In this document: piece by piece, positions 20,869 to 57,037 of the stretch
How positions within the stretch are numbered: position 1 is the first letter of the stretch
How the letters are laid out: every line of letters begins with the position of its first letter
Assembly (NCBI GenBank): GCA_950097015.1
Contig: CATNEN010000041.1
Location: 3,162,001 to 3,226,000, forward strand
Length of the DNA stretch: 64,000 bases
Source of the DNA: Macrostomum hystrix
Taxonomy: Eukaryota; Animalia; Platyhelminthes
Direction of reading: 5' to 3'
The notes under the pieces: generated by a model
What the model was told of the DNA's origin: nothing
Database searches by the model: none
What the model saw: only the letters and a program-made list of their open reading frames with translations
Program-made: the position numbers and the translations under genes

Positions 20869-23304
20869 ATGTTGGAGGAATTGAGTTAGGCAGCCACAAT
20901 GAAGCATTCTTGACAGTAACGCAAGGACAACAGCACTTTCAGGCTGAGTAATTTTTCCCCTGCTAAAACGAGTACAAGTGGGGGGGGAAATTCACTAGTT
21001 CAAACTCACAGTAGGCCTTAAATAATTTTGCCAAACAAACTAGAAATAAATTACAAGCTTGTATATCTTATATCAAACTCCTTATGAGTGACAAGGTAGA
21101 TAAACTGCAGAAGCGATTCTTGTGCGCAGTCTCAAGAGAAGCAGGGAGCTTTTTCTTCGGGGCCGTCGGGAAGCCAAACGGGCGAAAGGGAGAGGAGCAG
21201 CGCAGTCACCAGAATGCACATACAAGCTCGGCAGCTCAGAGCTGGGCCTCCCCTTCACTGCCCCAGCTACCGTCTACCCACATCGATTCTGACCGGCCGT
21301 GATTTATGAGGCAGGCTGGAGCATTCCCCAAGGAGACCAGGAGGACACGGAATGGCTGGGCAAGGACAGGTCAATTAGAGAGAAGGCCGGAGCCAGGCTA
21401 GCAGCCACTAATGCGAGGTAACTCGGTGGGTGGCCCGCGGCGACAGGCGGGCTGTTTTTACTGCCGAGCTGCACCCTGGGAGCGGAGCCGAGCTCAGGGC
21501 GAGGCCGGGCTCTGTGGCACATTGCAGGACGCTGTCGGCTCCCACAAGGCACACAGCCCACGCAGGCTAAGCGGATGGGGGTTGGAGTAGAAATCGATGC
21601 CGCACCCAACCCTTCATCTAACAAACTCCCAGCCTCCCCGCTCCCCTTCATCAGTCCCACCCCACACACGCCTGCTGCCCAGCTGCCACTAGAAATCCCC
21701 ACTGAACTGCCTCTCTCTCTAACCCCTCATTCACATTCAGCATTATCCCCGATGCCAAAAACTGTCGGACCGGGCAGCCCCTCCTACCAGCTCCCAGTCC
21801 GCATCCCACACATGGGGAAATGAGGCCCTGGGCTGAGGGTCAGGAAGAAAGAGACGTCAGTAGACTGAATGAATTTGGGAGAACTTGGCCAACACCCACC
21901 CCCGGTCTGGTTCTCCGCTGCCGACCCCACCGGTGCCAGCGCAACCCGTCCGCGAGGGCAGGGTGGAAAAGTGCAGGCGGCGGCGGATACATTAACAGCA
22001 GTTATGCTAGCAAAGAGCCGCAATAGACAAGGGAGTCTGGTTTGTATCTGGGGATCAGGGGATTTGACCTCTCTGGTAGCTGGCACAGGCACGGGAGACC
22101 CCACGCAAATCAATTTTTAAGCTTTCACACAGTATCGTCTCCACTCTAACAGACAGGCGATGATTGCAATGCGCTCATTGTCAGCAAGGAACTATTTTCG
22201 CACAGCAAGCCATAGCTCTCCGGCACTTGTAGGCAGTTTCAGGAAAGGCAGATAAAGTTATTGTGCAATGTTTGGGCTCTGCATAACTAAGGCGACACCC
22301 AAAGCTAGGCTAAAGGACGAGACAAGCGCCCTGATATGTGCTTCGGGCAGTCGGCATTGAGCACGAGCTGTCCCCACCTGGCCGGCTGCCAAGAGCGCTT
22401 AGGCCCGCCAGAATGGGAGACCGCACTTCCCAGTCGATAAAACAGGCCCGCGCCACACACAAGCGCAGACAGGCCAGCCACGCAAGGGGAGAGCTGCAGC
22501 ATTAAATAGTCCAGGGCAGGGAGAGCTTCTCCGCTCTTGTCAGTCAGAGCAGAGAGAGGCAGGGAAAGCTCAGTCCAGCTCAGATCCCAAATTTCTCACG
22601 CTCTCGTCATTGCCACTGCGCCCCGCTCCCCAGGATTTCTGGGGCAATGAAAAGAAAACAAATTAACGCCGCAGGAAAGAGCGCTGAGGATTTGGCGAGC
22701 AATGCCTGCTAAAAATATCCTCGGTGTGGAAGTGAGTCATCGTAAAAATAACCAGAGCTGTAGAAATTCTGAGCTCTTGAGTCTGAGCATAGAGGGGAAA
22801 GGAGAATGGGGAATCCAGATCTAGACACAACTCAAGGTGCCGCTGCAGCCCGGAAGGCTTGGGGCTGAGATCTTAAGTCACGCAACCCTAAATCCGCTGT
22901 TGGTCGTCTTTTGAGTTTCTATTCTCAAGAGCACGAAGGCCAGAGAGGGGAACTGGTGTGGTGGTGTGAGTCCCGGATGCAAAGGCCATTGCTGAGGCTG
23001 GCTGCTCTTCTGTGCGCATGGCGAGGAGCCGCATAGAAGCCAGCTTTAGAGCAGGGCTGCAAGAGTACTCGCAATGCCAAACAAGCGGCTAGGAAGGAAA
23101 AGCTGAGAGAACTTAGAAATTGCCCACCAGCTCAGCACTGTGAACCGCATCCGGGATTCCGGGCCTGTGCTCTTATAATATTAGAATGCATAACAGCGTC
23201 AGAGCTACGGATATCTTCGCGCACACAGGAATTGTTGCTGGGCAAACTGGCGAAAGCAGCTGTGAATAAAGCAGTCAGTTGGGGTAAGATGGAATGGGTT
23301 GAGA

Positions 23305-25600
23305 GCAAGCAGTGTGGGTGCTAGGTAGGTTCTAGTTGAGTTGGCTGAAAGCAGTGTGGGTGCTAGGTAGGTTCTAGTTGAGTTGGCTGAAAGCAGTGTG
23401 GGTGCTATGTAGGTTCTAGTTGAGTTGGCTGCAAGCAGTGTGGGTGCTAGGTAGGTTCTAGGGGAGTTGGCTGCAAGCAGTGTGGGTGCTAGGTAGGTTC
23501 TAGTTGAGTTGGCTGCAAGCAGTGTGGGTGCTAGGTAGGTTCTAGTTGAGTTGCCTGCAAGCAGTGTGGGTGCTAGGTAGGTTCTAGTTGAGTTGGCTGC
23601 AAGCAGTGTGGGTGCTAGGTAGGTTCTAGTTGAGTTGGCTGCAAGCAGTGTGGGTGCTAGGTAGGTTCTAGGGGAGTTGGCTGCAAGCAGTGTGGGTGCT
23701 AGGTAGGTTCTAGTTGAGTTGCCTGCAAGCAGTGTGGGTGCTAGGTAGGTTCTAGTTGAGTTGGCTGCAAGCAGTGTGGGTGCTAGGTAGGTTCTAGTTG
23801 AGTTGGCTGCAAGCAGTGTGGGTGCTAGGTAGGTTCTAGTTGAGTTGGCTGCAAGCAGTGTGGGTGCTAGGTAGGTTCTAGTTGAGTTGGCTGCAAGCAG
23901 TGTGGGTGCTAGGTAGGTTCTAGGGGAGTTGGCTGCAAGCAGTGTGGGTGCTAGGTAGGTTCTAGGGGAGTTGGCTGCAAGCAGTGTGGGTGCTAGGTAG
24001 GTTCTAGGGGAGTTGGCTGCAAGCAGTGTGGGTGCTAGGTAGGTTCTAGGGGAGTTGGCTGCAAGCAGTGTGGGTGCTAGGTAGGTTCTAGGGGAGTTGG
24101 CTGCAAGCAGTGTGGGTGCTAGGTAGGTTCTAGTTGAGTTGGCTGAAAGCAGTGTGGGTGCTATGTAGGTTCTAGTTGAGTTGGCTGCAAGCAGTGTGGG
24201 TGCTAGGTAGGTTCTAGGGGAGTTGGCTGCAAGCAGTGTGGGTGCTAGGTAGGTTCTAGTTGAGTTGGCTGCAAGCAGTGTGGGTGCTAGGTAGGTTCTA
24301 GTTGAGTTGGCTGCAAGCAGTGTGGGTGCTAGGTAGGTTCTAGGGGAGTTGGCTGCAAGCAGTGTGGGTGCTAGGTAGGTTCTAGTTGAGTTGGCTGCAA
24401 GCAGTGTGGGTGCTAGGTAGGTTCTAGTTGAGTTGGCTGCAAGCAGTGTGGGTGCTAGGTAGGTTCTAGTTGAGTTGGCTGAAAGCAGTGTGGGTGCTAG
24501 GTAGGTTCTAGGGGAGTTGGCTGCAAGCAGTGTGGTTGCTAGGTAGGTTCTAGGGGAGTTGGCTGCAAGCAGTGTGGGTGCTAGGTAGGTTCTAGGGGAG
24601 TTGGCTGCAAGCAGTGTGGGTGCTAGGTAGGTTCTAGGGGAGTTGGCTGCAAGCAGTGTGGGTGCTAGGTAGGTTCTAGGGGAGTTGGCTGCAAGCTGTG
24701 TGGGTGCTAGGTAGGTTCTAGGGGAGTTGGCTGCAAGCAGTGTGGGTGCTAGGTAGGTTCTAGGGGAGTTGGCTGCAAGCAGTGTGGGTGCTAGGTAGGT
24801 TCTAGGGGAGTTGGCTGCAAGCAGTGTGGGTGCTAGGTAGGTTCTAGGGGAGTTGGCTGCAAGCAGTGTGGGTGCTAGGTAGGTTCTAGTTGAGTTGGCT
24901 GAAAGCAGTGTGGGTGCTATGTAGGTTCTAGTTGAGTTGGCTGCAAGCAGTGTGGGTGCTAGGTAGGTTCTAGGGGAGTTGGCTGCAAGCAGTGTGGGTG
25001 CTAGGTAGGTTCTAGTTGAGTTGGCTGCAAGCAGTGTGGGTGCTAGGTAGGTTCTAGTTGAGTTGCCTGCAAGCAGTGTGGGTGCTAGGTAGGTTCTAGT
25101 TGAGTTGGCTGCAAGCAATGTGGGTGCTAGGTAGGTTCTAGGGGAGTTGGCTGCAAGCAGTGTGGGTGCTAGGTAAGTTCTAGGGGAGTTGGCTGAAAGC
25201 AGTGTGGGTGCTAGGTAGGTTCTAGGGGAGTTGGCTGCAAGCAGTGTGGGTGCTAGGTAGGTTCTAGGGGAGTTGGCTGCAAGCAGTGTGGGTGCTAGGT
25301 AGGTTCTAGGGGAGTTGGCTGCAAGCTGTGTGGGTGCTAGGTAGGTTCTAGGGGAGTTGGCTGCAAGCAGTGTGGGTGCTAGGTAGGTTCTAGGGGAGTT
25401 GGCTGCAAGCAGTGTGGGTGCTAGGTAGGTTCTAGGGGAGTTGGCTGCAAGCAGTGTGGGTGCTAGGTAGGTTCTAGTTGAGTTGGCTGCAAGCAGTGTG
25501 GGTGCTAGGTAGGTTCTAGTTGAGTTGGCTGAAAGCAGTGTGGGTGCTAGGTAGGTTCTAGGGGAGTTGGCTGCAAGCAGTGTGGGTTCTAGGGGTTCTA
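23305..25600. repeat. 42-bp satellite, ~54 copies (MTSS1 intron 3)
   Basis: Unit gcaagcagtgtgggtgctaggtaggttctag(ttg/ggg)agttggct. It produces the spurious 637-aa minus-strand ORF. Confidence 0.97.
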
Positions 25601-33053: not shown

Positions 33054-34841
33054 GTAGTTCAAAGGTTAAAGCATTGTGAACTTGATAAAGAAATTTTTAT
33101 AGGTAGTTTGATTCTTACAAAGAATTTTAATAAATGTATTTATGGCAAACCAAATAGGTATACTCTGCAAAAAATCGCGATAAAAAAATTAAGTTTATTA
33201 TCAATTATTGATGGAGAGGAGTGAGGAGGTGCGCCGAGCCGGTTTATATCTATCAGCGCATTGTTTTTCTACATATTTGAATTGTAATGATAACCCTAAA
33301 AGTTACTTTTCTCTCTCGATGCAAATATATACATACTAAAAAATTACCACTAATTTTTTTTCAAACTTGGAGCAAGTTTTAGTACAATATAAGTTGCATT
33401 AAAGCATGGCGCTTTATTATACACTTAGCTTGATTCTTAGAATATTCAAAAACAGCAAGTTTTTAATCTAAGAATTGTAAAACATAACGTCTACTTTAAC
33501 AGATTTCTTCTGACAGTTTTGATATTTGAAGTCAACTCGATAGGCTCTGACGGTTAAAATGATAAATTTTCGATTTTATGCAAAAATGTCACAATTTACT
33601 TTTAAAATGTATAGCATTCAATGGGACATGCATTCTATAATAAAGTAGAAGGCGATGATAACTCAGTGATTAGGCAGAGAATCTGGATGATATTTTATTT
33701 TAGAGTAGATTTCTTCTGGCAGTTTTGATATTTTAAAGCATTTTGTGCTTAGAAATGCACAAAGTAGTTTTTTGTTTTTATAAATTACTCACTATGCATT
33801 CTTTGGAACTGGAACTGGAACTGGTGCCGAAAAATTGGTCATATAAACATAGCGTCGATCCTAGATGATGTTAGAGAAAGAGATTTCTGTGCATACCAGA
33901 TGTTATACTCAGATGTTATATAGCAAAAATGCATTCTCTTTAATTTGAAACATCATTTTGTTGTCACTTGTCACAGTAGGCGACTAAAGTTTGTTGACAT
34001 TCAGTAGGTTTCCTTGGATTTGTAACAGTCCAGTTCAGCTGAGCATACAGGGTGTGGACTGAAGCTGGAATCAATGCTAGAGAAAATATACTTTTTGTGA
34101 ATAACCTACTTAGAATTAGATGTTATATTACTAAAATGCACTTACTTTAGGTGTAGTAATGCATTTGAAACATCATTTAGTTTTTTCATTTTGCATACAA
34201 AAAATTGTCATTGTCATGCTGACTTGAAATAGGAATTTAAAACCTGGTCACTCTTGATATCTGTTTATACATATTTAGTCTTTGCACTAAGGCCCTAGTG
34301 TTTAGGGATTTTAAGGGTGGCAAGTTGTATTATCGCAATTATGTTCATATGTTCATTTCAAATATTATTTTTATAGCTTTACTAATGTATGACAATACTT
34401 GTGACCAGCTTGTTCTAGTTTACAGCACTGCAAATGTTGTCATATACTATACCCAGATTCCACATGTATGTGTGTCACTTTATTGGCAGCTTAGGTATGT
34501 GTAGGCCCATAGCTAGGGCCTATGGTTGATATCATACATTAGTCACTTTGTATTGTATCTCGAACCAAATATCATTCTTATGACAATAATGCAATAGTGA
34601 GCATGTTTTTTTCTCAAAAATCTACTAAATAAATTAGTAAAGAAATTATTTAAAAACGAATGTGAAACCAAGTTTCTAAGAGCTATGGTCATTGATGTTA
34701 TAATCAATATCAATGCATTCTGTGCTATACTGAACAACTTGTGTCCTTTTGCTATTTACTTAACTCCGAATGCTTCAGTTCAACCAGCTCTTAAAAAGGT
34801 ACCAACATCAGCTATAATCAGGGTAATAACACTCTTTGTCA

Positions 34842-35645
34842 TGAGATAGGGCACCGACTGTATATTTCTTAGAAACGTTTTCCCGCGAAAATCTAGTATT
34901 TTGTTTGAAATTCAACTTTTGTTTAAATGCACTAATTTGTTTTAAAAGCACCTTTTGTTTAAATGCACCGAATAATTATTGTTTGAATGAAGTCGCGGAA
35001 TGGTAGGAGAATTTACTATAAATACACGAGAGAAAACAGGGAGACAGACAACGTGTTAACGTGTTGTATACACATACGTTCTGATAAAGAAAGCTTGAAT
35101 CATTAAAGTGTTCGTGTTAAAGAGTTATTTGAAGAGACATTGCGAAAGAGAGTAATAAGAGTTAAAGATAGCTGTAACTCTAGATCCACTGGAAAGCCCT
35201 ATGAAACGGACTGAAGATTGAAATTGAAGACTGAGCTGAAGACTAAAATTGATGGTTAAACTGAATGATAATTGAAAGACTGATAAAGACGGATAAAGAC
35301 TGATAAAGACGGATAAAGACTGATAAAGACGGATAAAGACTGATAAAGACGGATAAAGATTGATACAAAGTACTTATAGAAATAACACAGTAAAGTTATA
35401 AGCAGAAGGAAATATAGAGGAAAGATACCGGCCATACTGAAAGTATAACGCTACCAGATTGAATACATAACGCTACCAATTTAAATTGAGATAAAGCGAA
35501 TAATTAAAAGACATTCATAAGATTGACAAAAGTATAAAAGGCCTGTAACAACTTTGGTGACAGCAGTAGAAATTAATTTAGACCTACGACAACTTTGGTG
35601 GCATTATTAAAGAGTAATATTGAATTTAGTAAGAGCCCTAGGACA
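34842..35645 (+). repeat. 5' LTR (804 bp)
   Basis: TGAGATAGGG...CCCTAGGACA; TATAAATA at 35017-35024; no difference from the 3' LTR seen by eye. Confidence 0.95.
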
Positions 35646-35649
35646 ACTT

Positions 35650-35662
35650 TGGTGGCAGCGGT
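35650..35662 (+). other. Primer-binding site, tRNA-Leu type
   Basis: TGGTGGCAGCGGT matches the first 13 nt of the complement of the tRNA-Leu(AAG/UAG) 3' end as known from other animals (TGGTGGCAGCGGTGGGAT). It lies 4 nt after the LTR end. The host tRNA sequence was not checked. Confidence 0.8.
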
Positions 35663-35685
35663 AAAGGATCTAGAAACAGCGCAAG

Positions 35686-36705
35686 ATGAATCAAGCACAA
35701 GATGCAATCGCTATGTTGGCAGAAGAGTTGAGAAATCGACTCGAGATTGGACCTATGCGTCATGTAAAAATTCAAAAGTTCACACCTGGACAAGATATCA
35801 GAATTTGGCTTACCGCCTTTGATCAACGCTGTGAAGCAGAAGGTATTGAGGAAGACAATAGAAAGCAAGAATTGTTGGCCAATTTAGACCTAACCACAGC
35901 TTTTGCCGCAGTGCAAAGATTGAATCTTCCAGATGATTTGGAATATGAAGAATTTAAAGACAGATTAATTGAACGATTCGGAAGAATCGGCAGTTCCGCC
36001 GAATTCCGTGAAGAATTCAGAGGACGAATGCAGAGTAAGAATGAGTCAGTTGAAACTTTCTCTGATTGTCTGATTGAATTAGCTGCTAGAGCTTTTCCAA
36101 ACATGAATATGGAGCAGAAGGAAGAAGAGATCGTGGAACAGTTTATTAAAGGAGTAAGAATATCCGCTGAAACGCGAGAGAAATTGATCTTTGCTCAGCC
36201 TGCTAACCTACAGGAGGCCAGACGAATGTTAAGACGGATGGAAGCTGCATGGAATATGACTCATCGGAACATCGGCATGAGAATGGCCAAAGGCGAGGAA
36301 GAACTTGAACGACGACGAAGCGAGCAAGATCGACTGGAGGAAGTCATCAGACAGCAGCAAGCTCAGCTCGAATTGCAGAAGAAGACACTACAAGAACTGA
36401 TGGCCAACAAACAGCAACAACAGACTTATGCTCAGGCTGTAAACTCGTACCGGCCAAATAGTCAGCAACAACAGCAATACCAGCAGCGTCAGCCATATCA
36501 GCAGCCGCAATATCGGCAGCAGCAATTTCAGCGACCGACACAGCAGCAATACCCACAGCAACAGCAGCAGAGGCAGTGGCAGTCCCAGCAGCAGCAGGCG
36601 AGACCTCCACTAACTTGCTACAATTGCCGTAAGACAGGACACATCGCGAAACACTGCAGAGCTCCTCGGCAGAACCAGCCGCAGGCGCAGAATCAGGGAA
36701 ACTGA
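35686..36705 (+). CDS. gag: Gag with CCHC zinc knuckle
   Basis: 339-aa ORF just after the PBS; Gln-rich linker; CYNCRKTGHIAKHC. Confidence 0.93.
   Translation: MNQAQDAIAMLAEELRNRLEIGPMRHVKIQKFTPGQDIRIWLTAFDQRCEAEGIEEDNRKQELLANLDLTTAFAAVQRLNLPDDLEYEEFKDRLIERFGRIGSSAEFREEFRGRMQSKNESVETFSDCLIELAARAFPNMNMEQKEEEIVEQFIKGVRISAETREKLIFAQPANLQEARRMLRRMEAAWNMTHRNIGMRMAKGEEELERRRSEQDRLEEVIRQQQAQLELQKKTLQELMANKQQQQTYAQAVNSYRPNSQQQQQYQQRQPYQQPQYRQQQFQRPTQQQYPQQQQQRQWQSQQQQARPPLTCYNCRKTGHIAKHCRAPRQNQPQAQNQGN
36696..36702 (+). promoter_or_regulatory. -1 ribosomal frameshift slippery site G GGA AAC
   Basis: X XXY YYZ heptamer directly before the gag stop. The pol frame is -1 relative to gag and open from 36702 to the protease. 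Confidence 0.85.
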
Positions 36706-39700
36706 TTCGTGAGGGACGAGATGCGAGGCCACGCCCCTCTAAAAGTACAGCCAGCGAAACTCAGGCCTCAATTAAACTGGCAAGTAATAAGCAGAAACCT
36801 AATGTAAATGATAATGTAAACTCTGAGAAAGTACAAACTGAATCTAGTGCAGAAAAGAAAGGTCGTGAAGCAGTTGTGAAAGGCGAGATTCGGAATCAGA
36901 AAGTAACATTTTTGCTAGACACTGGTGCAGGACATAACTTCCTAGGAAAGAACTCTTGGAAGAAGATGGTTAAAGACAATGAAATTGAGCCAAGCAATCG
37001 AAGAGTGACCACGTTTGATGGAGCAACTGTAAAGATTGCAGGAGAAGTAACTGTTAAAGTAAAATTTGGAGAAGTTGAAATCGAGACCGAATTTCTCTTG
37101 TGCCATCACGACTGTGACGATATCCTAGGGATGGAATTTTTCCAAGATTATTGCAATAATATTAACTTTGCCACAGGCATGCTTGTACTAAGAAGTAATA
37201 TGTGCATTCCAATTCAATTTACTAAATTGCCAGTTCGTGTTTGTCGAGTATATTGCTCTGAAAAAGTAATTGTGCCAGCTAATAGTGCACTTAGAATTTC
37301 TGTTAAATTGCCGAAAAATGCCGAAGCCAATTATGGCACGCCAATGACTATTGAACCAATCAGAGGACAGATCAACACCAAGAAAGGTACTTTGGATGTA
37401 ATACCGACTCTAGTAACCATGAGTAATGGAATAGGAGTCATTGAAGTTATTAATAAGCAGAGTGACGACATACCGCTATCGAGATCTACGATTATCGGAT
37501 TTGCCAAGCCATTGCAAGCTAAAGACTTAACTTACTATGCCGAGCAAGATCAAGCAGAAAAAGTCAAACCCAATGGACATGTGAAGACTGCGAGATGCGA
37601 GCAATTAAGCCAAGAAGATTGGATCACTGAGATCAATCTAGGAGAAAATCTGACTAATAGACAGAAAGACCAAGTTATCGAGCTGGTAAAAGAACACAGA
37701 GAAGCATTCTCTCAGACCAGTCAAGAAATGGGTCTGACCCACTTGGTGACCCACGAAATCTCATTGAAAGACACCACACCGGTTCGGATTCCTACCAGAC
37801 GGATTCCACCGCATTTGCAAAAACAAGTGGATGACCAATTAGACGACATGCTCGCTAAGAACTTGATAAGACCAAGCTATAGTACTTATTCAACACCATT
37901 GGTCATCGTACCTAAGAAGGATGGAACTATCAGAATTGTCAGTGATTTTCGAGTTCTAAACTCAAGAGTGGATTACTATCCATATCCTCTACCGAACATC
38001 CAGGAGACATTTTCACATTTAACCGGAAGCCAGTACTTCAGCAGCCTTGACCTTAATTCGGGTTATTGGCAAGTTCCTATAAAGGAGGAACACAAGTACA
38101 TGACAGCATTTTCTACGTTAACGAGAGGCCAATTTGAATATCAAGTCATGGCGCAAGGACTGTCTAATGCGCCCGGTACTTTTCAAAGACTGATGAACTT
38201 AGTTTTAACTGGCATTCAGCACAAGTTTGCCATGTCTTACATTGATGACATAGTGACTTACTCTAAGACTTTTGAAGAACATCTCAGTCATCTAAAGGAA
38301 GTATTTCAAAGATTGATAACAGCTGGATTGAAACTAAGACCTAAAAAGTGCAACTTGTTTCAGCAAGAATTAAAGTACTTAGGACATGTAGTCGGAGTCG
38401 ATGGAATAAGAACAGACCCGGCGAAGATCGAGGCTATTAAAACATGGCCAGTGCCTAAAGATGTTAAAGAATTAAGAAGCTTCCTTGGATTGTGCAATTA
38501 CTATTGCCGATTTGTTAAGAATTATGCTGATGCCGCACACCCATTATTTCAATTAACTAAGAAGGGAGTGCAGAATTTCAAGGAAAAATGGACTAAAGTA
38601 CATACTGAGTCATTTGAACTATTAAAACAAAAGCTAATGTCCACTGAAGTGCTTGCCTATCCAGAGTTTTCTGAGAATGAAAAAGTACGAATGGTCCTAG
38701 ATGTCGATGCTAGCGACAATAGAATCGGCGCCTGTCTTGGACAGATACAGTCCGACGGCACTGAAAGGCCGATTGCGTACTTTAGCCGAGCTATGAAAGA
38801 TTCTGAAAAGAGATATCCGATCACCAGAAAAGAGTTGTTAGCATTGGTTGATGGGATGAAGCACTTTCGATTTTATCTCATTGGCAAACGATTCTTAGCC
38901 CGCACTGATCACAAGGCGATCCTATGGCTTCTACGCCAGACTGAAGCGCAAGGAATTCTTGGTCGGTGGATCGAGCGGCTAAGCGAGTTCCAGTATGACA
39001 TCGAGCATCGTTCGGGCAGCAAGCACAGCAACGCTGACAGTCTATCCCGACGACCTGCTGAGACTGACAATACAAAGCCAACACAAATTGACCGAAAAAT
39101 GGACTCTGAATTAGAATTGAAAGGAAGTGAACCGAAGGTGAGCTTACCAGACAGCCAGGTAGGACTGATTCAGCCACCTGAAGAAATCGAGGAAACCGAC
39201 ACCGATGTCCGCGATGATCGTGTAATTGAGAAGGAGATGCCAGCAAAACAGTTGACTAGCAGAAGCTCACTGAAGCATCAAAGCTGTCAGACTGATCTGG
39301 AGATTCTCAAAGAGCAGAAAGTACAGGAAGATGACAAAGATGATGAAGATGATGATGATGTATTCGAAGATGCGAGAGATTACGTTGAAGATGAAGAAGT
39401 TGAAGAAGAGAGATGTCGGAAACTTCTTACTGATTATCTCGAGGTTCCACTCAAGAAGGAGCAGTTGGTGCAAGCCCAGCAAGAAGACTCCTCAGTGAGA
39501 ACACTGATAAATTGGAAGAAGAGTGCAGTAGAGAAACCGACAGGAGACAAATTGTCAGAAGAATTGAAGAAAATGTTAAAGTACTACGAACAGATGAAGT
39601 TCGAAGATGAGTTGTTGACGATTCAAGAAGAAGGAATCAGAAAAATTGTGTTGCCAAAGAGCATTGAAAAAGCAGTGTTTAGAGAACTGCATGACAGCCC

Positions 39701-41255
39701 ATTGGCAGGTCACCTAGGCCGTGATAAAACCACGCAGAGAGTGCGTGAACGGTTTTGGAGACCCGGACTAGTCACTGCAATTGAGAAGTACGTTTCAGAG
39801 TGTATAACGTGTTTAGAGAGTAAAGCGGGACAGCGTATCCCAGCACCTGTGCAGAATTTTCCGATTTGTGAGCCGTTTGAGCGCCTCCATATAGATTTTA
39901 TTGGACCTGTGTCCAAGGACAGCAGAAGAGGGCACAAGTATGTACTGACAATAGTCGATAGTACAACTAGATTCCCATTCGCTTTTCCGACCAGGAACCA
40001 GAAATCAGATACTGTAATCAAGATATTACAAGAAAGAGTATTCGCAGAATACGGACAATGCAAATGGATCCATACTGATAATGGAAAGTCATTTACTAGC
40101 CGACAATTTCAAGCATTTTGTGAGCTGTATGGGATCAAGCACACGTGCACCACACCCTACCATGCTCAAAGTAACGGCTTAGTTGAACGATTTAATGGAC
40201 AAGTCAAATCGATAGTTACATGTCTGATTAACAAGGATCACTCTGATTGGGATCTCATGATTCCAGCCGCGCTCGTAGCAGTGCGAACGAGTATTAATCA
40301 ATCTACCGGATTTTCGCCTCATTATCTATTATTTGGGCGTGAAGCAACTTTGCCCATAGACAATATAGTCAAAAGACCGCACGAATTCGCTAACTATCCT
40401 AGTTATGTAAAAGACCATGCCGAAAGATTGGAGAAAGCTAGTAAAATTGTCAAACAGAAGCTAGAGAAGATTAATGAACAAAGAAAAGAAAAGGCCGAAG
40501 TTGCCAAGAAGCCAAAAGAAATTATTATTGGAGGAATTGTATTGTTAAATAATCCGCAGTTACATCAAGATGAGAGTCATAAATTTCACAGGAAAAAGCG
40601 AGCCGCGTACCGAGTACTTGCTCAGTTATCCGACACAGTTTATCGTGTTCAGAGAGAAATCGAAGGAGAAAGAGTAGGAGAGAAATTAATTGTGCATAGA
40701 AACAACATCACACCAGTGCCAAACACACAAATCACATTACAATCCGCAGAACAAACAAGGAAGGGAGATCACAAAATTAGTCACACCACACGGTCAAAAG
40801 TTAAGGGAGGTCAGGCCACCTCAAATAAAAATAAACAAAATGTAATTGTCATTAATGAAGAAGAAGACGAATCCGAAGAAGAAGACAGAATAAGATGGAG
40901 AGCTAATATGCCAAATGAAGAATCCGAAGACGAAAACTATGCAGAACAGGAAGCAATCCCTGACAATGAAAACGAAAGGCAAGAAGAAGCGAATGAGTCA
41001 GAACAAGAAGAAACAGACAGCGAAATGGACAAGACTGAAGAAATGAACATGAGTGACTCAGAGATTGAACATGAAGAAGAAAGAAATGTACATACAGAAG
41101 GAGCCCATGGCTATAATCTCAGACCACGAAATGACAGGACTGAACAATTGAACAGGGGAGAGCCTACCCCAGGAAGAGGAGTGTTACGTAACACCCAGCC
41201 AGTCACTCACGGCTTCGTGCCTCGGGAACGATACAGAAGATATCTACCCCAGTGA
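36702..41255 (+). CDS. pol: Pol polyprotein (protease, RT, RNase H, integrase)
   Basis: LLDTGA protease; YIDD RT; LDVDASD..RPIAYFSR RNase H; HDSPLAGH..C..C zinc domain and RLHIDFIG/TDNG/NGLVERFN DDE integrase. No stops or frameshifts. Confidence 0.96.
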   Translation: MIREGRDARPRPSKSTASETQASIKLASNKQKPNVNDNVNSEKVQTESSAEKKGREAVVKGEIRNQKVTFLLDTGAGHNFLGKNSWKKMVKDNEIEPSNRRVTTFDGATVKIAGEVTVKVKFGEVEIETEFLLCHHDCDDILGMEFFQDYCNNINFATGMLVLRSNMCIPIQFTKLPVRVCRVYCSEKVIVPANSALRISVKLPKNAEANYGTPMTIEPIRGQINTKKGTLDVIPTLVTMSNGIGVIEVINKQSDDIPLSRSTIIGFAKPLQAKDLTYYAEQDQAEKVKPNGHVKTARCEQLSQEDWITEINLGENLTNRQKDQVIELVKEHREAFSQTSQEMGLTHLVTHEISLKDTTPVRIPTRRIPPHLQKQVDDQLDDMLAKNLIRPSYSTYSTPLVIVPKKDGTIRIVSDFRVLNSRVDYYPYPLPNIQETFSHLTGSQYFSSLDLNSGYWQVPIKEEHKYMTAFSTLTRGQFEYQVMAQGLSNAPGTFQRLMNLVLTGIQHKFAMSYIDDIVTYSKTFEEHLSHLKEVFQRLITAGLKLRPKKCNLFQQELKYLGHVVGVDGIRTDPAKIEAIKTWPVPKDVKELRSFLGLCNYYCRFVKNYADAAHPLFQLTKKGVQNFKEKWTKVHTESFELLKQKLMSTEVLAYPEFSENEKVRMVLDVDASDNRIGACLGQIQSDGTERPIAYFSRAMKDSEKRYPITRKELLALVDGMKHFRFYLIGKRFLARTDHKAILWLLRQTEAQGILGRWIERLSEFQYDIEHRSGSKHSNADSLSRRPAETDNTKPTQIDRKMDSELELKGSEPKVSLPDSQVGLIQPPEEIEETDTDVRDDRVIEKEMPAKQLTSRSSLKHQSCQTDLEILKEQKVQEDDKDDEDDDDVFEDARDYVEDEEVEEERCRKLLTDYLEVPLKKEQLVQAQQEDSSVRTLINWKKSAVEKPTGDKLSEELKKMLKYYEQMKFEDELLTIQEEGIRKIVLPKSIEKAVFRELHDSPLAGHLGRDKTTQRVRERFWRPGLVTAIEKYVSECITCLESKAGQRIPAPVQNFPICEPFERLHIDFIGPVSKDSRRGHKYVLTIVDSTTRFPFAFPTRNQKSDTVIKILQERVFAEYGQCKWIHTDNGKSFTSRQFQAFCELYGIKHTCTTPYHAQSNGLVERFNGQVKSIVTCLINKDHSDWDLMIPAALVAVRTSINQSTGFSPHYLLFGREATLPIDNIVKRPHEFANYPSYVKDHAERLEKASKIVKQKLEKINEQRKEKAEVAKKPKEIIIGGIVLLNNPQLHQDESHKFHRKKRAAYRVLAQLSDTVYRVQREIEGERVGEKLIVHRNNITPVPNTQITLQSAEQTRKGDHKISHTTRSKVKGGQATSNKNKQNVIVINEEEDESEEEDRIRWRANMPNEESEDENYAEQEAIPDNENERQEEANESEQEETDSEMDKTEEMNMSDSEIEHEEERNVHTEGAHGYNLRPRNDRTEQLNRGEPTPGRGVLRNTQPVTHGFVPRERYRRYLPQ

Positions 41256-41663
41256 TTTCGAGAACAATAGAGAACAATGGGAGCTCAGTTGACACAGATT
41301 TGCGTTAAAGTCAATGTTAATTGATTAAGATTTAAAATGAGATAAACTGAAAAATCAAATAAAAAGTAATCTGAAAAAGATATTGGAAAAGTAAAAACAT
41401 CAATGTATTCGGGAGAATGAGATCTGTAAAAAGAATCCAAACATGAAAGTATAACTGTAAATGATAAAGTCGGAAATTGAAATTAAATGAGTGTGATATA
41501 TGACATGGCAGAGTAAGGCTGTCAAAAGTGGCCCTCAGATCCCTAGGGAGCCCGGACACATTGATGCGGTCCAGTTTTCGCTCTATATAATAAGACCACC
41601 TAAAGGCCCGCCAGAGAAGAATCTTAAGACAGTGCCAAAGTGTGAAAATTGCAAACCCAAAGA

Positions 41664-42467
41664 ATGGATAACAACCTAGACGACTTCCTACAAGAATTGT
41701 TGGACGGCGGAGATTTTGCTCAAGAAAATATGGAGACGGCGCAAGAAAATATGGAGACGGCGGCACCAGAGCGAGTAGCGACGCGCCCCAAGCTGCCAGT
41801 CGCTACTGCAATGGCCACGAAAAGACCGCGCACACCATCACCGGTAGCGGTTAAGCAGGCGAAAACGGCACAGCCAGCAGGGATGACAAGCAGCGGCCGC
41901 CTCAAATCGGTAATTTGTTTGAGCACGGCAGGACCTGTTCGGACAGCGACCGAGGCATCCCACAGGCGATATTCGGCTGGGCCGGCACTGCAGCAATTGC
42001 GGCCCGCACCGCTGGAAGCCAACGCTAGAAGGGAGCCGCAGCCGACGCAGGCCAAACCGCAGCCGACACAGGCCAAGCCGCAGCCGACACGGGCCAAGCC
42101 GCAGCCGATGCCTGTCGTGCCGCAGTCTACGCCGCCTGTGCCGCAGAAACAACCGACGCCAGCAGAAGAAGAAAGGGAGAAGATGGTTCACGACCTGACA
42201 GAATACATGGAGAAGGTGGCATTCCACACATACGAACTGTCATACCCGCAACGAACTCAGATATGGAAAAGTATGCTGGTACTGAAGAGTCTGCCGCAGC
42301 ATCAGGCCGTTACCGCACTTCAAGCCGTCGCCCACAATGTACATCAGAGCGCAGCAACCGGCGAGGCGACTCTACATCGGAAAGTGACTAACATGGAATT
42401 TAGATGGGCCTTCCGTCAAATCGGCTGGCCTTATTATCGAGTGTTACCCGCCCCATGCGCATTTTAA
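41664..42467 (+). CDS. Extra ORF3 of the gypsy element, 267 aa, unknown function (not env-like)
   Basis: Uninterrupted GC-rich ORF between pol and the PPT, ATG at 41664. Acidic N-terminus, Pro/Gln/Ala-rich middle, predicted helical C-terminal domain. TATATAA at ~41584 upstream. Confidence 0.6.
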   Translation: MDNNLDDFLQELLDGGDFAQENMETAQENMETAAPERVATRPKLPVATAMATKRPRTPSPVAVKQAKTAQPAGMTSSGRLKSVICLSTAGPVRTATEASHRRYSAGPALQQLRPAPLEANARREPQPTQAKPQPTQAKPQPTRAKPQPMPVVPQSTPPVPQKQPTPAEEEREKMVHDLTEYMEKVAFHTYELSYPQRTQIWKSMLVLKSLPQHQAVTALQAVAHNVHQSAATGEATLHRKVTNMEFRWAFRQIGWPYYRVLPAPCAF

Positions 42468-42634: not shown

Positions 42635-42644
42635 AGTAGGGAGG
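42635..42644 (+). other. Polypurine tract
   Basis: AGTAGGGAGG ends 5 nt before the 3' LTR. Confidence 0.6.
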
Positions 42645-42649
42645 TCAGT

Positions 42650-43453
42650 TGAGATAGGGCACCGACTGTATATTTCTTAGAAACGTTTTCCCGCGAAAAT
42701 CTAGTATTTTGTTTGAAATTCAACTTTTGTTTAAATGCACTAATTTGTTTTAAAAGCACCTTTTGTTTAAATGCACCGAATAATTATTGTTTGAATGAAG
42801 TCGCGGAATGGTAGGAGAATTTACTATAAATACACGAGAGAAAACAGGGAGACAGACAACGTGTTAACGTGTTGTATACACATACGTTCTGATAAAGAAA
42901 GCTTGAATCATTAAAGTGTTCGTGTTAAAGAGTTATTTGAAGAGACATTGCGAAAGAGAGTAATAAGAGTTAAAGATAGCTGTAACTCTAGATCCACTGG
43001 AAAGCCCTATGAAACGGACTGAAGATTGAAATTGAAGACTGAGCTGAAGACTAAAATTGATGGTTAAACTGAATGATAATTGAAAGACTGATAAAGACGG
43101 ATAAAGACTGATAAAGACGGATAAAGACTGATAAAGACGGATAAAGACTGATAAAGACGGATAAAGATTGATACAAAGTACTTATAGAAATAACACAGTA
43201 AAGTTATAAGCAGAAGGAAATATAGAGGAAAGATACCGGCCATACTGAAAGTATAACGCTACCAGATTGAATACATAACGCTACCAATTTAAATTGAGAT
43301 AAAGCGAATAATTAAAAGACATTCATAAGATTGACAAAAGTATAAAAGGCCTGTAACAACTTTGGTGACAGCAGTAGAAATTAATTTAGACCTACGACAA
43401 CTTTGGTGGCATTATTAAAGAGTAATATTGAATTTAGTAAGAGCCCTAGGACA
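42650..43453 (+). repeat. 3' LTR (804 bp)
   Basis: Same sequence as the 5' LTR, offset 7808 nt; followed by the TSD GTCA. Confidence 0.95.
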
Positions 43454-44400
43454 GTCAGCAGCTTCAATTTAAATGACAATATCCTGATAGTCTTGTTTGG
43501 CATATTGGCAAGTATATTATGATTGTTTTCCCTTTTGTTTATAATTTAGCAATACTTTTATTGATATCAATGAAAGGGTTACCAAAGTTTTTGTTACCAA
43601 ACTGTCTTTTGCTTGTTACCAAAATGTCTGTTACCAAAGTGTATGTTACTGAAAGAACATAATTCAGTGAAAGTGGGGGGAATGTCTTTTTTGTTCAAAC
43701 TGATATTAGCCCAATTTTATTCAATGAATAGACTAGGGCATGACTAGGACATGAATGCATTAAGCTATTCATTTGAACAGTCAACCAGTTTTATGAAAAA
43801 ATATTAACTTTTTGATTAAATGTCTTGAGAGCAAAGTGATCCACTCTACCAAAGCCAGTCCTAAGCCTAGCTGCAAAAGTATAAAGGTTCAAATAAACCT
43901 GCCAAACTTTCCCTTGAAAAGCTGGCCCCATGCTGAGAGATCATTTTTGCATCCTTGGTTGTTTTTATCTGTTTATACAGAATCTCTAATGGAAATTTGA
44001 ATTCTCAGCTAGGGTTAGGCAAAAGTTTCAGTAACACTGCAAACTAGGCTAGAAAAGTATTAATCGATTTCAAGTTGTCTAATTTCTAAATACTCTGTTG
44101 AAGTGTACCGATTTTTAGACCATTACAACTGTGAAATGACTGTCACAATAATGTTTTGCACCAAAAAACTACAATGCTACTATTGCTTTTGTCGCGCTAT
44201 GTGGAACAGTGGACATGCAAAATGGAACGGCCCATGAATTCTATGACCAAGCATTTGAATTCACATGAGAAAGTAAGCCATAGACAACTCAAATTGTCAT
44301 GCTATATGGAACGATGAGCCAGAATAGAAGGAACGATTTTAGTTTTTCACAGAGACAACAACACGCTTTCATTTTCTTTCGTTTGATCAGTTAAGCAATA

Positions 44401-53840: not shown

Positions 53841-55586
53841 GTATACAAAGAAAAATTTATATTCACCCAGAGCTCGATTCTTAATACTATTAAGAATAAA
53901 CATTATTTAAAAAAACTGCAAAGACCAATTGCCTCTGAAGTTCAACTAAAATTTCTGACCAACTGATCAGCTTGATTGCAACAGAGGTTTTGTCAATTTT
54001 CATTGCGATTGTTTCAGTAGAAGTGTCTGCCTGCGAATGTCAAGCTGGCTCTCTTAAATACACTGGAGATACAAACACACTTTAACCTTGAATAACTCGC
54101 AGAAGCTTTGATTATTCAGTCTGAAATTTTACAAATCTAGTCAACTCGATTGTATCAGAGGTTTTGTAAATTTTGATTGCAATTGTTGCAGTAGAAGTTT
54201 ATTTTTGAAAGTACAAGAAAATACACTGCGGAGATAGGAGCAAACTTCAAAGCTGTGTAATAAATAATATTTTTTGGAACGTTATCTTAGTTGCATCCGA
54301 AGATCTGTTAAGTTTCGCTGTAATTGAATGGTTATTTTTTAAGTTACAATGCTCTTGTTTGAATGTGAATGTCAATCAGGAAATTAATACGTGACGAGTA
54401 AGCGCAATGAGCACTAGATTCTTAAAAGCTCTGCATTTAATGAACGAACCGCTTAGTGTATCTTTAAATATATTTAATAAAATGAAAACTATTACACTGT
54501 TTCACCAGATGCTTGTATTTTTTGTCATAATAATTAATATTAGTTTCATTTTAACACTGAAGCATCACTTTAAGTTAAATCCAAAGTAAGGCAACGTATC
54601 TATGTAAACAATTAAAACAGTAGCTATTATCTATTAGTTGACAAATTACGAAATGACTGTAAAATATGCGTGAGCTTTTTTTGTCTAGTCTTCTGTGCAA
54701 TAAGTGGTCCTTATTGCCATGGTACCATAGCAATAGGTCCTTGTTTGCAAGTTATTGGCATGATACAGCGGCAATAATACTGCTTGGCATAATGTCATGA
54801 TACTGAGGCCGGCAAAGTCCTACTTTGAGGCCTGAGGCCTATTATTTAGTTTCATCATAATAACTTATATTTAACTATAAAATGTAGTAAAAAGAAAAAT
54901 GAGCAGACTACAAAAATCAATGCTTTATAGAGGATAGGCCCTAATAACTAAAAAATAGTGCAGTACAGTAGGCCTAGCTAGATAATTATTATTAGTTGTA
55001 TAGGCTACTATTTTGCTCTGGTTAAAGGCCAGTTATGGCTGTTATGCCAATAAGAATGCAAATATATTTTGTGTAAAGTAATAAAACAAATTCATTAAAA
55101 ATGGATAGGAAAGACAGTAGGTCTAAAATGAACAATTCATTTTAATGAATAAGTATTAGTATTGTAGGAGATAAGTGGGTGGTGAAATTTTGAAATACTG
55201 AAATAAAAAGACAAAAAATATGAGACAGAAAAAACTGTTTAAAGCTAGCATTTAACTTAAGTTTGTGCAAGATTTGACCAAGTATTTTAATGACAAGCTA
55301 TTCACAAGTTTGCTTTCATGAACTTATTTAAACATTTGCTGCAAATGTTTATTGTACAAATGATTTGCATTAAGCAAGATTGATAAATATATAATTTGTG
55401 TTTTGGTAAATAAATTAATTTAATATAATAAAATTCACCATTGGCATGAAGAATGATGATAGATTTGTCATAGTGCTTCTGTCTTTAATTATTGTTTGAA
55501 TAATAGTGCTGAGAATATATTTTTTATATATATTATATATAGGCCTATATATATATATATATATATTATTAAATTTTTATATATTA

Positions 55587-56544
55587 TGTAACAGTTAGCC
55601 ACTTTATAAATACGTTCTTTCTATTATAAAAATTGTAAAAATAAATAAAATCAAAAATGCGCCAAAAAAATAATTTTTGTTCATCTTTGTACCGCATTGA
55701 AAGTAATGCTTATGTAAATAATTTTGTTTTAATACTGTATCCTGTAAATAATACTTTGTAAAATATTATCGTTTTAACAAAATGTCAATTTGCTCTGTAT
55801 AAATAGCCGCGAGTTTTGACCAGGAAAAATAAAGGGTTGGGACAAACAAACCAGAGTGTTAAAGAGTCTAAAGTGTCTCTGAAGTTTTCTTGTAAGAAGT
55901 TGAAGTTAAAGACAAGTGTTTTAAGGTGTTTTCAAGAGTTTAAAGAGTGAGTTTAAAGTGAGATAATTTGAAGTGTGTAAAGAGTTGAAATTGAAGGAGT
56001 TTTAGTGTGTTTGTAAAGAGTTTTTAAGTGTGTTAAAAAGCAAATTTCCGAAGGTATTGCATTGTGTTATTCATTTTAAGAAGAAATAGCAGTGAGAGAT
56101 ATAATCAGAATTATACTCAGGAATTATACTAAGAATATTACAGAAGAGAAACTGCTAAACTCTAATCTCGGGGACGCCTAATTGACTGGAAATGTGTACA
56201 GTTGCCTAGTTACCGCTCGTGCATATATAAACGCTACCATTTGAGAAGTTAAAACGGCCCATTTAAGGACCGCCATTTAAAATTATCTATTAGTTGAGTC
56301 AACAGCAGTGGAATTATTAAAATAGCCCAAGAACAACTTTGGTGGCATTCAGTAGAATTAAGTAAAAAGAAGTAAAGCCCTGCAACAACTTTGGTAACAG
56401 CGGTGGGATAGTTAATTTCCACCTGTAACAACTTCGGTGTCAGCGTCAGCGATAGAATAAAAGTTAAACTATTTAAATAAGGCCTGCAACAACTTTGATA
56501 ACAGCGGTGGGATTAATATTGAATAAGAGGAAAGCCCTGCAACA
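55587..56544 (+). mobile_element. Solo LTR (958 bp) of a related gypsy family
   Basis: TGTAACAG...CTGCAACA ends; 4-bp TSD ATTA (55583-86 and 56545-48); TATAAATA at 55798. Shares the aacgctacca motif and ACAACTTTGGT cassettes with the full-length element's LTR. Confidence 0.82.
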
Positions 56545-57037
56545 ATTATATTATTTTAAAAGAATTTCTTGGTAGTATATGTGTGTTTAGTTAGTCTAAG
56601 TATTGTATTTAGTTGGTTTAAGTATTGCATATTTAGTTATTCTGGGTAGAGTATTTAGTCAGTCTATATAGCATATTTTGTTATTCTGTCCAACTACTTT
56701 TATTGTATATATGTATTTCTGAGTATAGCCTATAGGCTTTCCAAAGAGTATTACTAATGATCTCAAGTGTACAGCAATATCTTCTACTTCTCTCTTGAAT
56801 TCTCTTTGTATCTGTCTCTATATGTTTTATAAAGAATAATAGAACACTTCTGAGAATTATATACAAATTCAGTATAAAACCACGTCCATTTTCTTTTGCT
56901 ATACTCAGCTGTATTTATACTTATTTTGTAATAAAAATGTTTACACATTTAAACAAATTATTATATGGTATAACAAATATTCATTCATTAAATAGGTCAC
57001 TTAAAAAATATATTTTACTGTATAGTTTTTAAGAAAT

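Follow-up and report, generated by a model that had tools for sequence, protein, structure and literature searches.

The stretch of DNA analysed here, termed the window, comprises 64,000 nucleotides of the Macrostomum hystrix genome and contains a young Ty3/gypsy (Metaviridae) element of 8612 bp, which is the host of the cassettes described below. Its two long terminal repeats (LTRs) are identical at 804 of 804 positions when the window is compared with itself, and the element is laid out as follows.

34838–34841, plus strand: target-site duplication (TSD) GTCA, left copy; identical 4-mer at 43454–43457
34842–35645, plus strand: 5′ LTR, 804 bp, TG..CA; 100% identity with 42650–43453
35017–35024, plus strand: candidate TATA box TATAAATA within the LTR (motif scan only)
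35686–36705, plus strand: gag open reading frame (ORF), 339 aa, with a CCHC zinc knuckle (Pfam zf-CCHC)
36876–41255, plus strand: pol ORF with protease, reverse transcriptase, RNase H, and integrase in Ty3/gypsy order (Pfam)
42638–42649, plus strand: polypurine tract AGGGAGG (42638–42644) and the 5-nt linker TCAGT, ahead of the 3′ LTR
42650–43453, plus strand: 3′ LTR, with cassettes 1 and 2 at 43349–43413, ending with the cassette 3 end (43444–43453)
43454–43457, plus strand: TSD GTCA, right copy

The marks of the Metaviridae are all present: TG..CA LTRs with a TSD, the pol order together with the gag knuckle, and both a primer-binding site (PBS) and a polypurine tract. Within pol, Pfam places the aspartic protease at 2–90, the reverse transcriptase (RVT_1) at 345–505, RNase H at 572–705, and the integrase at 927–1112. 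The nearest named relative of the gag product is a Macrostomum lignano protein with 66% identity. A third ORF of 272 aa, with a TTG start and without a Pfam match, lies between pol and the 3′ LTR (41649–42467).

The plus strand of the LTR is rich in A (40%) and poor in C (13%). ATTAAA at 35503, also from the motif scan, and the TATA box at 35017 are the only hints toward a putative R/U5 border. Tandem units of 20 nt (GATAAAGAC; GATAAAGACG and GATAAAGACT alternating) occupy 35275–35350 within the same LTR. AGGGAGG stands 5 nt ahead of the 3′ LTR in 7 elements, and in 7 elements the left junction AGT/TG mirrors the right junction CA/ACT, the slash marking the LTR border. Because of this mirroring, the linker ACTT belongs to an inverted repeat that extends beyond the LTRs in the linear cDNA, and ACTT presumably represents the nucleotides that are trimmed off by integrase.

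Three cassettes and their primer

The last ~110 bases of the focal LTR consist of a stack of modules. Each begins with a stretch of ~10 nt ending in ACA (..CCnnnnACA), continues with ACTT, and is completed by a sequence starting with TGGTG that is complementary to the 3′ end of tRNA-Leu. A sequence-only reading of this DNA had described three such cassettes, and on re-reading they lie exactly where it had placed them.

35541–35573, plus strand: cassette 1, internal, type A; end ..CTGTAACA at 35541–35550, ACTT at 35551–35554, PBS-like sequence from 35555
35582–35605, plus strand: cassette 2, internal, diverged type B; end ..CTACGACA at 35582–35591, ACTT at 35592–35595, TGGTGGCATT at 35596–35605
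35636–35662, plus strand: cassette 3, in use; true LTR end ..CTAGGACA at 35636–35645, linker ACTT at 35646–35649

The PBS of cassette 3 is TGGTGGCAGCGGT, 13 nt in length (35650–35662). That cassette 3 alone forms the real LTR end, as had been claimed, is borne out by the agreement between the 3′ LTR and the TSD: the identical LTRs end at 35645 and 43453 and the element is flanked by GTCA, which places cassettes 1 and 2 within both LTRs. The array (35529–35671) is spanned with zero differences by a contig of an independent public run and is therefore not an assembly artefact. With at most one mismatch allowed, the window of 64 kb contains 9 occurrences of the 12-mer ACAACTTTGGTG where 0.43 would be expected, a count reached in 0 of 100 shuffles; eight of these nine fall within three LTRs.

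The host genome holds four tRNA-Leu genes (three AAG and one TAG) with 3′ ends ...GTTCGAATCCCACCGCTGCCA, from which the expected 18-nt PBS after CCA addition is TGGTGGCAGCGGTGGGAT. The focal true site agrees with this sequence over the first 13 nt, and the match of all four host genes to the primer site upholds the earlier identification of the PBS as a tRNA-Leu complement. Most true sites of the focal clade likewise match tRNA-Leu over 13 nt and then read AAAGGAT, not GGGAT (35650–35669 in the window), a form kept in 10 distinct elements and in contig L094 (around 922–946); a perfect 18-nt true site is found in a few relatives (L016).

The internal sites of the focal copy are weaker. The PBS-like 18-mer of cassette 1 matches the tRNA-Leu complement at 13 of 18 positions and differs from it, as first counted, by four G>A changes within its first 17 nt (positions 6, 11, 14, and 16). 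Cassette 2 has the site TGGTGGCA, in which 8 nt are intact before the sequence diverges (9/18 matches); relatives of the focal copy keep a 14/18 version of this type B site. Duplexes with the last 18 nt of the tRNA are predicted at −14.2 kcal/mol for each of these two sites and at −30.6 kcal/mol for cassette 3, against −39 kcal/mol for a perfect 18-nt site and an LTR background with a mean of −3.6 and a best value of −13.2 kcal/mol. By these predictions, the last module is the only credible primer site in the focal copy, whereas relatives have several.

A further motif, ACGCTACC, lies upstream of the modules on the plus strand at 35448–35455 and 35470–35477, again at 43256–43263 and 43278–43285, and at 56231–56238. 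These five sense copies, all within LTRs, compare with 0.84 expected in the window. The motif is the perfect complement of tRNA-Leu nt 1–8 (GGTAGCGT), and its predicted pairing of 8 bp (−15.1 kcal/mol) is the best such site in the LTR. Of 23 junction loci, 21 carry it in sense and none in antisense, in 1–4 tandem copies with units of 22–27 nt; in two sister elements free of internal modules (L075 and L077) it stands 44 nt ahead of the LTR end. Judged by this complementarity, ACGCTACC may be a second contact, one for the 5′ acceptor strand of the primer tRNA.

Module arrays and LTR ends across the family

The family-wide survey covered loci L001–L030 and L066–L093, that is, related LTRs (69–100% identity) together with every genomic junction of LTR end, ACTT, and intact site; it took in the best-scoring copies only, and a near-intact 11-mer was needed for a module to be detected. 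Units were named from real copies only: A is focal cassette 1 and B is cassette 2, and the remaining types are D, E, G, H, U, and X, along with C and F, whose sites match at 16 of 18 positions. Among ~40 distinct LTR copies, the number of internal modules ranges from 0 to 5, and arrays are present in all but two lineages, L075 and L077 having zero internal units. The orders seen are A-B, B-A, A-B-A, A-B-F, A-F-F, A-B-C, B-C-A-C-A, and D-C-E-A/C/X. As in a minisatellite, the units run head to tail and differ between copies in both number and order, and recent tandem duplications are visible as C-A-C-A in L022, F-F in L025, and C-C in L083. The 5′ and 3′ LTRs agree in 7 of 7 pairs examined. A reading of L025 as an LTR followed by a real site and a duplicated leader was discarded, the fuller sequence being a solo LTR with the tandem F-F duplication and a TSD.

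Internal 18-mers match the tRNA complement at anything from 18/18 down to ~9/18 positions, against an average of 7.9 and a maximum of 12 for TGGT-anchored 18-mers elsewhere in the window; the earlier view of the internal cassettes as diverged copies of LTR end, linker, and tRNA-Leu site is thereby sustained. Five internal contexts carry the perfect 18/18 complement. Changes within the sites are mostly G>A (94 of 140 across 35 distinct variants, the events not being independent), a bias in keeping with the composition of the LTR plus strand, rich in A and poor in C. Predicted duplexes amount to −28.4 kcal/mol for C and F units, −24.3 for the H unit, −14 to −18 for B units, and −14.2 for the A unit, so internal sites that reach only about −14 kcal/mol in the focal copy attain up to −28 to −39 kcal/mol in relatives. 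A different primer tRNA was also considered for the variant internal sites; T-loop-anchored patterns yielded no tRNA gene, only control-level matches or the elements themselves.

One contig from another public run, L094, extends the comparison to an element whose gag is 67% identical. It carries three internal modules and then the same 13-nt site followed by AAAGGATCTAGA. An A-like unit comes first and a B-like unit next, every module has A(A)TT as its linker, and AAT/TG stands at the left junction. The pair AAT/TG..CA/ATT is a compensatory change relative to AGT/TG..CA/ACT.

In the related loci L005/L007, L016/L020, and L068/L069 (G000 C24, C1), an LTR of the same type is combined with another leader (..CAAATTATCAGACTTCAC..), and the LTR starts lie only ~3.9 kb apart; these are probably non-autonomous derivatives of reduced length, and L068/L069 seem to run LTR-internal-LTR-internal in tandem. 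More distant tRNA-Leu-primed elements (L035 and L046, on G000 C1 and C2, and L095, a JGI metagenome contig) have one upstream partial site, TGGTGGCAGCG, 50–100 nt ahead of the true site and without the ACA and linker. A 43-bp satellite in L065 (4762–6008; G000:C25:4333761–4335007) comprises 29 copies with 15 nt identical to the tRNA-Leu primer site in each unit, and it adjoins apparent coding sequence. As a candidate module array (G000:C25:4333800–4334974) this 43-nt repeat was rejected: it has no end or linker and reads AGGTGG, which makes the match one of chance. A 42-bp satellite at 23172–25500 of the window (~55 copies, 94–97% identity) is unrelated to the modules.

The window also holds an LTR of a sister family.

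55587–56544, plus strand: solo LTR of the sister family, 958 bp; TSD ATTA at 55583–55586 and 56545–56548

Its four internal modules have their ends at 56335, 56387, 56430, and 56491, and its terminal end is at 56544. LTRs of this sister family are 96–98% identical to one another and match the window LTR up to different points. Two of them (L092 and L093) pass into unrelated flank directly after the ACA of the first module; L070 and L071 also end at the first module, and in these the intact site, leader, and gag come next. L073 and L083 end at the second module, L084 and L089 at the third, and the window copy, L082, L090, and L091 at the fourth. In a tree of LTR bodies, the short L071 is the nearest neighbour of the long window sister copy. 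The sequence common to L082 and its short relative L070 runs precisely to nt 18 of the site and no further; this is as much of the tRNA as should be copied into plus-strand strong-stop DNA.

Five module types (A, B, C, F, and X) form the ends of 14 solo LTRs of the focal clade, each of which has a perfect 4-bp TSD. TSDs were checked in these 14 and in the window sister LTR, five sister-family copies lying outside the check. The sequence-only reading had proposed, as support for its model, copies that end at other cassettes and have TSDs of their own, and such related copies exist. Related copies thus end at different modules, and the choice of module would set the position of the LTR end; differing ends are what initiation at different sites would produce, although deletion could mimic them.

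Origin and role of the arrays

Minus-strand synthesis starts at the primer, and everything upstream of that point as far as R is U5, which is copied into both LTRs. The U5 border being set by the position of the primer, modules upstream of the primed site enter minus-strand strong-stop DNA and hence both LTRs; site copies that are found in both LTRs were accordingly upstream of the point of priming at the time the element copy arose.

A module consists of an integrase end (..CCnnnnACA, ~10 nt), the presumably trimmed ACTT, and a tRNA-Leu site copy, together with an A/T-rich spacer; whichever module adjoins the primed site would become the LTR end. The array may have originated by duplication of a stretch across the border between LTR and primer site. 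Its expansion, shrinkage, and permutation would follow from template switching by reverse transcriptase between module cores that share ~25–30 nt, and a second route would be open if priming or plus-strand transfer shifts from module to module. A module used in this way would have its site rewritten from the tRNA, which would explain both the perfect internal sites and the nt-18 boundary between L082 and L070. For the focal copy, the last module alone would be competent, the two internal ones being weakened former or alternative sites. On balance, it is probable that duplication across the border, template switching between cores, and shifts of priming or transfer together build and reshuffle the arrays. 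No discordant element, with short LTRs and modules left in the leader, was found among the 7 LTR pairs examined. The spacers could not be traced to a source: aligned locally with six present leaders and with the U5 tail ahead of the first module, they did no better than shuffled sequences.

Slippage, whether in replication or in reverse transcription, may instead have multiplied a unit that happens to straddle the border, giving an ordinary LTR minisatellite with no alternative priming; differing ends would then be deletions between the real and an internal site. The focal LTR is indeed prone to tandem duplication in general, since it also contains the 20-nt GATAAAGAC units and, in 1–4 copies, the 22–27-nt ACGCTACC units. 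Plain duplications of units are seen in the arrays themselves, and homology-driven deletion can yield differing ends. The primer site lies outside the LTR, however, so that no account can do without at least one event of priming downstream of a site copy; a U5 deletion made during strong-stop synthesis leaves the terminal module in place, yet close relatives differ in their terminal type; and the perfect 18/18 internal sites point toward contact with sequence templated by the tRNA. A minisatellite of this kind is regarded as unlikely.

The sequence-only reading had proposed a ratchet, in which a module is duplicated, the downstream copy takes over, and the old one is retired within U5, which could leave a chronological record. 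Takeover by the downstream copy follows logically, since any sequence shared by the two LTRs has to be upstream of the point of priming. The one-way record is not supported; it is contradicted by the permuted orders and fits poorly with the nesting of module-free relatives. In its strict form, the ratchet would add modules only at the outer end and retire old ones inward, and it finds some agreement in the site matches: the outer internal unit surpasses the inner one in its match to the tRNA in 17 arrays, against 6 with the opposite trend, of 29 distinct arrays (Spearman 0.27), and the outermost internal unit reaches 17–18/18 in L024, L073, L080, and L083. Alternating match patterns (10, 16, 10, 15), the coexistence of B-A with A-B, and internal duplications break this order, however, and in the focal copy it is the outer internal unit that is more decayed (9/18 vs 13/18). 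The A and B types and the A-then-B order are also old, recurring in L094, whose gag is no more than 67% identical, and no stretch of the LTR is better conserved than the module region, which is not what a decaying relic would look like.

The tree of LTR bodies weighs in the same direction. B-C-A-C-A, A-B, B-A, A-B-A, A-F-F, A-B-F, and D-C-E-x all fall within a single well-supported, short-branched group, and the module-free L075 and L077 are nested within the group as a whole, a placement that their long branches make unsure. Such module-free relatives inside the tree suggest that losses are likely, and the series of counts from 0 to 5 was rejected as a growth series on the same placement. With units both gained and probably lost, the array is not a dated record, and a strict ratchet is considered highly improbable.

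The main rival to border duplication and reshuffling is that selection keeps the internal modules because they work as a platform at the RNA or cDNA level. The roles envisaged are spare or attenuated primer sites and ends, docking of tRNA-Leu or of Gag/nucleocapsid (for packaging or primer placement), and subterminal binding of integrase; with the upstream ACGCTACC motifs pairing to the tRNA 5′ acceptor strand, the whole would amount to a tRNA-Leu docking region. Conservation argues for this: across 14 LTRs of A-B type, the last 120 nt are the best conserved, with a mean pairwise identity of 0.88–0.92 vs 0.75 overall. U5 ends are generally conserved in LTR elements, however, so conservation alone is weak evidence, and the conservation of module cores in the survey is partly due to the detection method; the cores are either homogenised or under selection. 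The A-like, B-like order kept in L094, with a linker that differs alike in every module, also favours a platform, as do the predicted tRNA 3′-end duplex of the C and F internal sites, near that of the focal true site (−28.4 vs −30.6 kcal/mol), and the sense-only occurrence of ACGCTACC. On the other side, the sister elements L075 and L077 do without any internal module, module number and order vary freely among near-identical LTRs, and a signal of RNA structure is absent, both arrays folding worse than shuffles (z +1.1 and +1.5). A selected platform is possible but, taken as a whole, improbable.

Two observations sit poorly with the arrays being a pure by-product of reverse transcription, namely the change of the L094 linker in concert in all modules and the greater conservation of the module region; neither is predicted by such a model, and together they hint at selection on the internal modules. 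It is possible, though improbable, that the array is a selected, working set of alternative primer and integration modules, with an LTR end movable between them and with ACGCTACC as part of a multi-site docking region for tRNA-Leu. The internal modules would then be kept matched to the active end, as the linker changes in concert and stays complementary to the left-end linker.

A role of the internal modules as decoys or extra targets for 3′ tRNA-Leu fragments, which would silence LTR elements by way of the primer site, is very doubtful. The C, F, and H units do keep 12 nt (CAGCGGTGGGAT) that would pair with the seed of such a fragment, with two mismatches near the 3′ end of the primer. Both internal cassettes of the focal copy, however, are without the half that the seed would pair with (predicted duplex −14 kcal/mol vs −31 for the real site), and extra target sites are as likely to harm the element as to protect it.

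Known systems and implications

The canonical junction between LTR and PBS in Ty3/gypsy elements has the same components: a TG..CA LTR, a 4-bp TSD, a tRNA site a few nucleotides past the LTR, a polypurine tract, a CCHC-bearing gag, and the order protease, reverse transcriptase, RNase H, and integrase. It differs in having one module of end, linker, and site, whereas here 2–6 stand in tandem with the extras inside both LTRs, and copies of one family end at different modules.

To our knowledge, the nearest precedent comes from laboratory vectors with two primer-binding sites. Voronin and Pathak are said to have found in 2004 that engineered retroviral vectors of this kind initiate at either site, the site used fixing the content of U5. 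As predicted from sequence, the flatworm RNA would likewise carry two sites for the primer tRNA; the vectors are constructs, whereas the flatworm arrays are natural, multi-copy, and inherited. Every site here, moreover, comes with a duplicated integrase end and can thereby yield an end competent for integration.

Extended contacts between primer and template are familiar from the Ty1 boxes, the bipartite primer site of Ty3, the primer activation signal of HIV-1, and the U5-TψC interaction of Rous sarcoma virus. These resemble the predicted pairing of ACGCTACC with tRNA-Leu nt 1–8 in that regions outside the 3′-end site pair with other parts of the tRNA. The known contacts, however, involve the T or D arm or the anticodon loop and not repeated copies of the primer site, and pairing of ACGCTACC to the 5′ acceptor strand, unlike them, is inferred only.

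Tandem repeats within LTRs, such as the enhancer repeats of U3, are similar in that head-to-tail units vary in copy number between copies. Repeats of the U3 type tune transcription; the present unit carries both of the cis elements that define the border, and a change in copy number therefore moves the LTR end. No description of tandem modules of LTR end and primer site was found in the literature searched, which is no proof of absence. If a selected docking array were the true explanation, its cis architecture would be one undescribed for any retroelement.

LTR borders are usually treated as fixed. Here the border moves in steps, because integrase end and primer site are duplicated together. 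One consequence is for annotation: LTR finders that expect a single primer site just outside the LTR will misplace the ends of such elements or discard them. The flatworm family further offers a living system with many young copies in which the evolution of U5 ends can be tested, along with the natural frequency at which reverse transcription starts at a second site, and whether the primer-site copies still function or are vestiges.
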